Assembly (NCBI RefSeq): GCF_001194135.2
Contig: NC_068997.1
Location: forward strand, 31,577,368 to 31,637,788
DNA from: Octopus bimaculoides
Lineage: Eukaryota
Reading direction: 5' to 3'
Length of the DNA stretch: 60,421 nt
Positions 13,301-16,300 of this stretch are shown here, piece after piece. The stretch's first letter is position 1; every line of letters begins with the position of its first letter. The position numbers and the translations under genes were made by a program. The notes under the pieces were generated by a model. The model was not told the origin of the DNA and made no database searches. It saw nothing but the letters and a program-made list of their open reading frames with translations.

Positions 13301-16300
13301 TCATCTCAATTTTTTACTTAAGTTACCAGTCATTATCAAAAAATTAAAAGGGATTCCCTTCACATGACAGGGGAAGATCTCACCAAGCAGTGATAATCAT
13401 ATAATTACGAGAAAATATCTATGTATACATAAACAGCCTTTCAGATGTGTACAGTTACTTTAATAGATAATGTAAACTATATGCAAAAGTCATAAAATAT
13501 GTTAAATTTGTAAAGTATAGCTAGCTTGATGTGTAAATTATGTTAGATGTATAAATTATATATATGTCAATTGGGTGCAATATACATGTTATATGTTAGT
13601 TGTGTCCATTGTATGTGCAACTTACCAACATTAGCTGGAGCAACAGGGATGATATATCCTGCAACAACAATATCTGACATCGGCCTGTGAACTACCTGAT
13701 GCAACACATCATTTATAAGAATTTTTATATATTTTCTGTCTGATTCTTTCACTACCAATAATTGGTACAGCTGAAATTGGTAAATAGAAGAATGAATGCA
13801 TGGAGTGAGTGAGTGAGTGAGTGAGTGAGTGAGTGAGTGAGTGAGTGAGTGAGTGAGTGAGTGAGTGAGTGAGTGAGTGAGTGAGTGAGTGAGTGAGTGA
13901 GTGAGTGAGTGAGTGAGTGAGTGAGTGAGTGAGTGAGTGAGTGAGTGAGTGAGTGAGTGAGTGAGTGAGTGAGTGAGTGAGTGAGTGTGGATCTGAAATC
14001 TAAACTAACTAGACAGCCATGATTTAATGTTATGAGCTTTGAAGCAAGAACTGAGAAAATGTTTCTCCCAAAAGTTAAATCTACAGTGAAACTCTTAAAC
14101 GTTGTTGCAAAATTACTGAATGGAAAATCACAAGGGAGGGCCCTGGTAATTGAATACTGGTGCAGAAAGTTCATGTTCTGCAGAACAGCCTTCTTTATTC
14201 TACTCAAAAGAGCAATGAATATTGAACTTGATATTTTTCAAAGTCATTTTCCAAGTTAAGAAATGTTTGTCCTTTACACACTTCAATAGTAACATGGAAA
14301 AGGATAAGGATAAACAAAGGATAGAAGATTAAAGAGATATCAATAAGTTGTTTACCTCAGGAACAATTTGTAGAGATTTCAAGAGTGCTGCTTTACTGTC
14401 ATCATCATCATCATCATTGATTAACGTCTGTTTTCCATGCTGGTATGGGTTGGACGGTTTGACTGAGGTCTGGAAAGCCACTGGCTGCACATGCTGCAGT
14501 AAAATCTGAAGAGCTTCCTCCAACAGGTGATTATCAAAGGGATACCAGTGATCAAGGCCACTACTTCCCAATGCTTGGCTGGCAAGGAGAGATGAGTGGG
14601 CAACTATTGTGCCAAATAATATAGCTTTAATCACTGAGTTTATATGAGATGCTTCTCGCTTCAGATATTTATTGATTTGTGTCAAGACACAGCAGACAAC
14701 TAGATGGAATAATTATTAGAAAAATGATATCAAATATATTTTTTACCAAATAGTATTAGAAAAAAAGCAAAGACAAAGCAAAAGGAAAATAAGCCAGGTA
14801 TTAACAAACTATACCTGACAAGGTATGATTTGTTGATGAATAGAGATAAGGTCAAAGGCCAGAGAAAAAACATTTTCAATCCTTATAATGAATTAATATA
14901 CACACAGGTATGAATGCGCATGTGTGTAAATGGGGGGGAAGTGTAGTCTATTTCTCTCCATATATATATATATATATATGTGTGCATGCGTGTGTGTGTG
15001 TGTGTGTGTGTGTGTGTGTGTGTGTGTGTNNNNNNNNNNTGTGTGTGTGTGTGTGTGTGTGTGTGTGTGTGTGTGTGTGTGTACACATATGTTTATATTT
15101 GTTATATATGATATGAGCAAAAAAGAATTTTAGAGTCACGAGGTGCCAGAAAGGAGAAGAGCTACAGTTAATTGAACTGGCTCTGTTATTTAGTTTCAAT
15201 AGAGTGTAGATCGTTTAATTTACTGGATTCTGCCAAAATAGAAAAAGAAGGGAAGAAAGGAGGTGGCGCAGAGGAGATGTAATAAAGGAAAAGGAGGAAT
15301 AATAATAATAATAATAATAATAAAAATAATCATAATAATAAAAATAGTGAGAAGAATTTTGAGGTGATGGTGGACAATGGTTATGATGATGATAGATGTC
15401 ACAGACCTGAGTCAATGCAGTTTGGTGAAGATGGCAGATGTTGGATGTACAACTGTCGATCCGTTAAACAGTCTCCACCAAATCTGAACAGATGTGTCCA
15501 GGATAGTTTAAATAGATATTTATGCAATGTCAAAGGGAAAATTTGGGATTCTTTCTGAATTATCCAAACTAATGAGGACTTGAGGATGTTTTCTGCAAAT
15601 AAAAAAAAAAAAATACAAATCAATAATTATCATTCTATGAATGTACACAGATGCACACACACACGCAGACATATTTAAATGCACACATAAACACACCATC
15701 TAGATCATGATCTTATTTTATTTACTAGAAAATATTCTTCTCCAAGCGATTTTCTACTGTTTATATAATTTATATTTTATCATCTTTTTGCATATATAGA
15801 ATTTGTCCAATCTGACTGCTCCTAATGTAAAATGATAGGTTATTGTTGAGTGAAATTTGGCTACCATTTATAACAGGTCTACTTATGGTGGGGTTTTTTC
15901 TTTTCTAAATGTATCCCGAAATAGTGGGTTATCTATTTATCTGTTTGCCTATCCGTCTATCCGTCTATCAGTCTATCTAATATATGTCTGTCTGTCCATC
16001 TATCTATCAAATACTTGTCTGTCTGTGTCTATCAATCTATCTATTATCTGTCTGTCTTTCTTTCTTTCTTTCATTTTTGAAAAGAAAATGACAGGCTGTG
16101 AATGAAAATGCAAATAGTCCACCTCTTCTAACTAACTGTGCTCCACATTTCTCTGTCGTCATCAACATACTGTTTCAGTATAAAAAACTAATACAAAACA
16201 AGCTTGGCACCAACTTGATCACATAAAATTGTCACAATGACAGGAAATCAATCAAAATGATTTGTGTTTCATTCTCCACTCCTATGGTCAAGTCAGAAGC

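Follow-up and report, generated by a model that had tools for sequence, protein, structure and literature searches.

Evidence for a retroposon tail inserted in a coding exon of a divergent dynein heavy-chain gene of Octopus bimaculoides and probably translated as a loop of the AAA6 lid

A stretch of 60,421 nucleotides (nt) of Octopus bimaculoides DNA (contig NC_068997.1; this whole stretch is called the window, and all positions are numbered on it) carries a divergent dynein heavy-chain gene on its minus strand, and one exon of this gene, exon D (14356..14699, 344 nt), contains the 3' tail of a long interspersed nuclear element (LINE). We regard it as highly probable that this is a real, lineage-specific retroposon insertion, made into a coding exon that already existed. 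It appears that the insert is also translated, as an extension of a short loop in the AAA6 lid of the motor, and to the insertion and its translation taken together we give, from sequence comparison and a structure model, a probability of about 0.6.

The insertion and its empty site

The insertion is most clearly seen by comparison with a related species, represented by genomic contigs (L001-L004) that are identical in the four retrieved, with five runs listed. These contigs have the same exon with the same splice sites and both flanking introns, without the element. Their exon is 266 nt long and reads CAT-ATTAATAAAGATGAC-AAT (LQH-INKDD-NK) at the site, where the window reads CAT-[93 nt]-AGT, and the eight homologous dyneins are all without extra residues there. 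The empty site, in the same exon between the same introns, shows that the element entered an exon already present, and did so in one lineage. The only protein in the databases that matches exon D, P0001, is an open reading frame (ORF) read from the contigs of the related species. Sequence divergence between the two species amounts to 8.4% in the exon and 13-17% in the introns, the exon being the more conserved (p 0.02), and apart from the inserted sequence all insertions and deletions between them are found in the introns.

The flanks of the insert show no target-site duplication; instead, about 9 nt of the target (ATTAATAAA) are missing as compared with the empty site. Insertions of 5'-truncated LINEs do not require such a duplication. 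The end of the element, GTTAAATGATGATGA in the consensus, resembles the target, TTAATAAAGATGA.

The first-pass annotation of this DNA had proposed that a 5'-truncated retroposon landed in an existing exon, by direct coding capture and not by exonisation of an intronic copy, without a clean target-site duplication, and had suggested a comparison with orthologous exons. The uninserted exon of the related species agrees with all of this, as its acceptor and donor, like the exon itself, pre-date the element. The annotation had also given the insert as 93 nt, or 31 codons, which is right for the length of the segment but not for the sequence added: the segment replaces the 15 nt that encode INKDD and shares GAT GAC with the empty site, and the net gain is 78 nt (26 codons).

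The inserted segment and its repeat family

The segment attributed to the retroposon is a LINE 3' tail that is in sense orientation and 5'-truncated; it lies at 14398..14490 on the minus strand, as delimited by BLAST, a core motif, an alignment of copies and the empty site. It is read as 31 residues ending in six aspartates (Asp6), which are encoded by a (GAT)5-GAC run at 14398..14415 on the same strand (period 3 and 6.3 copies in Tandem Repeats Finder). The stretch derived from the element is at most 14404-14490, the terminal GAT GAC (14398-14403) being present already in the uninserted exon.

When the exon was compared by BLAST with the window, positions 210-301 of the exon (window 14490-14399) matched at least ten other copies, on both strands and with 76-88% identity (best expectation value, E, 6e-27), and the remainder of exon D was unique. 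A 33-nt core of the family occurs seven times in the window at three mismatches or fewer, as compared to none in 100 shuffles, and the copy in exon D differs from this core at a single position. The segment had earlier been assigned to a LINE-tail family present elsewhere in the window, and these copies bear the assignment out. In the alignment of the copies, similarity begins exactly at GTGCAGCC and continues to the (GAT)n end. The other copies reach 200-300 nt further upstream, and the exon copy is therefore 5'-truncated; they likewise terminate in (GAT)n, in the same orientation relative to the tail. Upstream of the repeat, five of the seven other copies have 25 or more codons free of stops in the frame that gives Asp for (GAT)n. 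The exon copy is individually diverged: its closest match in the window is 87% identical, and a 3-nt difference is private to it. Dating the insert by its divergence was also tried, and the value of about 10% from a crude consensus of nine copies was judged unreliable for this purpose.

Longer members of the family are found in the window as well. A 5'-truncated copy at 24637-25040 (minus strand), in the intron that immediately precedes dynein exon A, retains the end of ORF2 and about 300 nt of 3' untranslated region followed by the same tail. A degenerate, nearly full-length LINE of about 3.3 kilobases (kb) with the same tail and (GAT)n occupies 39200-42470 (39.2-42.5 kb) on the plus strand and contains an assembly gap. 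Endonuclease-like and reverse-transcriptase-like ORF pieces, assigned by eye, are spread over its three frames, and a Pfam search of these short pieces gave only RVT_1, at an E of 0.002 that is below cut-off. This element is likely the type from which the insert was derived. By its architecture, with a length of about 3.3 kb, putative endonuclease and reverse transcriptase, and a repeat tail, the family may plausibly be placed in the RTE clade, whose LINEs have short interspersed nuclear element (SINE) partners sharing their 3' tail and end in short tandem repeats. The window family is similar in size, in its endonuclease-like and reverse-transcriptase-like pieces, in its trinucleotide-repeat tail and in its many 5'-truncated copies, but its reverse transcriptase matches the Pfam profile only weakly. 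RTE elements have been reported in Octopus (Petrosino et al. 2022, PMC9115989; repeat annotation PMC13282606), in a literature that cites Malik and Eickbush 1998 and Tay et al. 2010.

Reading frame and splice sites of exon D

Exon D, as defined by translation and splice sites, is entered in phase 1 and left in phase 0. Its acceptor, atctag/TTGTCT (14700..14705, minus strand; the slash marks the junction), corresponds to atttag/ in the related species, and its donor, CCTGAG/gtaaac (14350..14355, minus strand), is conserved there and is in phase with the next exon, E. On an approximate position weight matrix, this donor is the best in the exon, with 6.4 bits as compared to 3.0 or less for every other GT. 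In the middle part of the exon the frame of the gene is open, and both other frames contain stops. Two points of the first-pass annotation thus hold, that GAG/gtaaac is the sole strong donor and is in phase with the next exon, and that 14398-14490 reads without a stop in gene orientation.

The insert itself brings two in-phase GTs, CAT/gtgcag at 14490 (1.6 bits) and CCA/gtggct at 14481 (2.2 bits). An internal intron from the GT at 14490 to the AG at 14396 was rejected from the sequence; it would be 95 nt long and out of frame, and would yield a TAA. For the codon that follows the Asp run (14395-14397, minus strand), the window has AGT (Ser) and the related species AAT (Asn), and the change destroys an AATAAA hexamer carried by the uninserted exon.

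Location of the insert in the motor

On both flanks of the insert the alignment with the eight homologues and the related species is free of gaps, in agreement with the earlier claim of dynein-like sequence on either side, and at the site itself these sequences have 8-10 variable, often acidic residues as compared to 31 in the window. Pfam gave no match for exon D alone, with or without the insert. A sub-threshold match to AAA_lid_11 (E 0.014; 16 bits with a cut-off of 31) appeared only with the insert replaced by INKDD, and no lid match was reported by Pfam scans of the fish homologues P0003 and P0005. A profile of the subfamily could be aligned with human DNAH9 (PDB 8j07) through AAA6 including the lid, with an E of 3e-11, and in this alignment the insert point falls in LEANAKVPYD, the loop that joins the DLTISVNVLYNFL helix to the next one.

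An AlphaFold model was made of AAA6 only (364 residues) from an alignment of eight sequences, and it is of moderate quality, with a mean predicted local distance difference test (pLDDT) of 61 and a predicted template-modelling score (pTM) of 0.55. In this model the insert is a coil with pLDDT below 50 (residues 255-279), and the helices on its two sides (239-251 and 278-300) have pLDDT of 70-89, the second of them starting in the Asp run. The top Foldseek matches of the model were dynein heavy chains, among them an AAA5-AAA6 reconstruction, at a low template-modelling score of about 0.3. Because the DNAH9 profile alignment places the insert in a loop and the model has a coil between helices, the insert would lie where two helices of the AAA6 lid are joined by a short, variable loop, a placement that sequence and model support well.

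The human DNAH9 lid and the exon D gene have in common the position in the protein, the helix-loop-helix pattern and several conserved residues, but the canonical GE.NYGGR.TD.WD motif of AAA_lid_11 is replaced by a different sequence in the exon D gene. The first-pass annotation had put the insert in a loop of AAA_lid_11 and had suggested a structure prediction of the lid. The loop is found again in both the alignment and the predicted structure; for membership of the Pfam family the match is a sub-threshold one.

The host gene

The gene could be followed through exons A (about 24081-23854), B (19159-18891), C (16904..17090, part of the AAA6 large domain), C3 (15407..15592), D and E (13626..13770), all on the minus strand and placed by splice signals and homology. 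Exon C3, which feeds exon D, has a strong acceptor, tttatttgcag/, and the donor CAG/gtctgt in phase 1. Joined in phase, the six exons make 1359 nt without a stop, as compared to 29 and 43 stops in the other frames. An existing partial model of 344 residues in UniParc, P0002, begins at a Met within exon E, continues downstream and carries Dynein_C; no contigs encoding P0002 exactly are on record. When the seven exons of P0002 are counted too, phase and reading frame are intact over at least 12 exons.

In the spliced product, Pfam recognised Dynein_C (PF18199) with an E of 6e-26 and 92 bits, the cut-off being 25.7, and the product matches axonemal dynein heavy chains in PDB at the start of AAA6 and in the C-terminal domain. 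An exhaustive HMMER search found the closest relatives, at 27-30% identity, among long proteins of gar, bichir, bowfin, lungfish, newt and toad, whose automatic names are inconsistent (DNAH9-like, beta-chain-like, DNAH14). Two of these homologues were scanned with Pfam, P0003 and P0005, and have AAA_7, AAA_8, MT, AAA_9, Dynein_heavy and Dynein_C. With homologue proteins as queries, tblastn returned the exons of the window in order, from 57.8 kb to 4.2 kb. From Dynein_C, the full-length dynein homologues and this order of exons, the host gene is, by its sequence, the 3' third of a divergent dynein heavy chain.

Exon C3 was absent from the first-pass model; its counterpart in the homologues is FCVWLTSEPG..KVSWH. 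Since it ends in phase 1, as does exon C, skipping of C3 would also keep the frame. Two other arrangements were considered for this part of the gene. Splicing of exon C directly to D is compatible in phase but leaves out about 60-70 residues of the homologues, and C-C3-D was adopted instead. A further candidate, at 16670-16500, was rejected: its acceptor at a pyrimidine tract and its three donors are all out of phase with the neighbouring exons, and C3 fits the homologues better; one further weak acceptor of this candidate would fit exon C.

Most of the closest relatives (P0003-P0009, P0017 and P0024), drawn from 1.8 billion representative proteins, come from gar, bichir, bowfin, lungfish and amphibians. 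This pattern looks like that of a poorly described dynein heavy-chain lineage which has been patchily retained. At 55211-55687 (minus strand), a long open stretch rich in Glu/Asp and Gln has the position of an acidic insert that follows the stalk in the homologues, and this stretch may represent a low-complexity dynein exon. About 30 nt before the exon E acceptor, at 13803-13987, lies a perfect microsatellite, (GAGT)46, which reads (ACTC)n on the minus strand.

A possible mechanism

Most probably, a LINE resembling RTE elements and ending in (GAT)n was retrotransposed into exon D after the split from the related species, which keeps the empty site. Because the end of the element resembles the target, it is probable that the RNA tail (..GUUAAAUGAUGAUGAU) paired with the exon's own TTAATAAAGATGAC and that target-primed reverse transcription started from there, and the GAT GAC shared by insert and empty site is the likely microhomology at which this took place. 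The copy would have been truncated at its 5' end to about 87 nt, with the loss of about 9 nt of target and no duplication, leaving the exon 78 nt longer.

With the tail set on in-frame GAT (Asp) codons, the downstream frame would be kept automatically, and the Asp-reading frame of the LINE tail appears to be naturally free of stops over its last 25-50 codons. What would remain is that the truncation point be a multiple of three, at odds of roughly 1 in 3. Since this is the only requirement, the in-frame and stop-free outcome is not in itself evidence of selection. The splice sites of the resulting exon are still in phase, and it encodes, within the AAA6-lid loop, 26 additional residues that are predicted to be disordered and that end in Asp6. 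The normal splice sites are probably still used, and the insert would then be translated and tolerated as an extension of the loop, with no known function of its own.

Is the enlarged exon translated?

Over the 83 codons that flank the insert, comparison with the related species gives 0.061 nonsynonymous (dN) and 0.192 synonymous (dS) substitutions per site, with a dN/dS of 0.32 (Fisher p 0.011), a ratio which averages both lineages, covers the flanks only and is silent on constraint after the insertion. As a comparison of codons it shows purifying selection on the flanks of the exon along the path between the two species. That silence is one of several points that speak against translation of the insert, or weaken the case for it. 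The structure model is of moderate quality, the age of the insert is poorly defined, and the donor matrix is an approximate one. Furthermore, splicing may be disturbed at two places: the insert contains an acceptor-like ctttccag/A (at about 14467), the use of which leads to a stop, and the AGT codon after the Asp run makes a donor-like ACA/GTAAAG (site at 14396; 1.3 bits, out of phase). In the protein databases searched, no transcript-derived or annotated protein with exon D or with exons A-C was found, only the genomic ORF of the related species.

This last point is weak evidence in either direction, as coverage of the animal group seems low. The peptide of the LINE tail was used as a query against the protein databases, both for the frequency of such captures and as a control of coverage, and it gave no candidates, in spite of the repeat being very abundant. 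Because an abundant peptide is also missing, the missing product of exon D says little about expression.

A rival reading is an insertion that is real but gives no working protein, either because the gene is silent or decaying or because the enlarged exon is mis-spliced and its transcripts degraded, the open frame being a matter of luck. We consider this unlikely, though worth taking seriously. No transcript-based or full-length annotated protein of the gene was found in this animal group. The subfamily is very divergent, its lid and P-loop motifs are degenerate, and AAA_lid_11 stays sub-threshold even without the insert. The patchy occurrence of the relatives (gar, bichir, bowfin, lungfish, amphibians) would fit frequent loss, the internal acceptor-like site and the new GTAAAG could lead splicing astray, and an in-frame, stop-free insertion is not improbable at about 1 in 3, given GAT priming and an open tail frame. 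Against this reading stand the phase and open frame of at least 12 exons, a clearly recognisable Dynein_C, splice sites conserved between the species, a dN/dS of 0.32 on exon D itself and, the insertion apart, indels in the introns only.

Translation of the gene without the insert would also be conceivable, if splicing to exon E took place from one of the weak donors that the insert brought with it, 14490 (CAT/gtgcag) or 14481 (CCA/gtggct); the protein would then lack the insert and the 14 residues that follow. Both sites are in phase 0, like exon E, and the exon has been lengthened from 266 to 344 nt by the insertion. These donors score 1.6-2.2 bits, however, as compared to 6.4 for the conserved one, and their use would remove 14 residues that align in all homologues to the start of a conserved helix (..F.q.l.e.v..vY), which makes this outcome improbable. 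Still less credible is an error of assembly, or an allele carried by the sequenced animal but rare in the species. The draft sequence of the window does have gaps, with runs of N at, for example, 15030, about 19300-19750 and about 25840-25990, and independent reads of the same species were not found in the databases. Both junctions lie, however, within 93 nt of ungapped sequence, the copy has diverged individually (87% to its best relative in the window, together with the private 3-nt difference), and the small deletion of the target and the microhomology are what a real retrotransposition would leave, not a chimeric join. Such an error or allele would come as a considerable surprise. We therefore prefer a real insertion whose sequence is translated as a loop.

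Comparison with known insertions and significance

Coding sequence derived from transposable elements usually arises by exonisation of intronic copies. In classical exonisation of SINEs and LINEs, as in exon D, codons derived from the element come to lie in a host gene, but there new alternative cassette exons are formed, whereas exon D uses no new splice sites and the element is internal to an old exon.

Human Alu elements have merged into existing coding exons of principal isoforms, and eight of 11 principal-isoform Alus extend the C-terminus of the protein (Martinez-Gomez et al. 2019, PMC6924539). The human cases (PMC6924539) are like exon D in that the retroposon lies within an existing coding exon and does not form a new cassette exon; those that are translated generally preserve the frame, and at least one of the inserts is in a disordered region. 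The insert in exon D differs from them in being a LINE tail of about 87 nt, in lying in the middle of a conserved motor domain, in having an orthologue with an empty site, and in being known from genomic sequence. The case is accordingly one of a transposable element merging into an existing coding exon, a kind already documented in human genes. What sets it apart is that the element is a LINE tail and not a SINE, that it is inside a motor domain and not at a terminus, that the empty site is available in an orthologue, and that, as a plausible mechanism, the frame was kept by means of the trinucleotide tail.

The case alone leaves our understanding of dyneins and of retroposons unchanged. If the insert is translated, exon D would show with unusual clarity how direct insertion of a mobile element can lengthen the interior of a conserved motor domain. 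The state before the insertion is preserved in the sister species, which makes the effect on the protein directly testable. The case also suggests a simple rule, that the reading frame is kept when a tail of trinucleotide repeats primes on codons in frame with it, and this could be checked genome-wide.

A far more general reading would be that (GAT)n LINE tails prime on GAT-GAT/GAC (Asp-Asp) codons with an open Asp frame, so that acidic surface loops are, in these genomes, preferred and frame-safe landing sites, and that such tails systematically seed disordered loops of variable length that end in poly-Asp. We hold this to be doubtful, a speculation at the far end of what the single case suggests. 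If it were true, the AAA6 lid would carry a translated, length-polymorphic acidic loop, and this might affect the regulation of the dynein.

Other features of the window

Remnants of Tc1/mariner-type transposases were observed at two places, at 37200-38200 on the minus strand, where HTH_Tnp_Tc3_2 is matched with an E of 1e-7, and at 12100-13060 on the plus strand, where the remnant was recognised by eye. An intact ORF of 143 amino acids with several C2H2-type zinc-finger motifs lies at 3683-4111 on the minus strand, inside a dynein intron.

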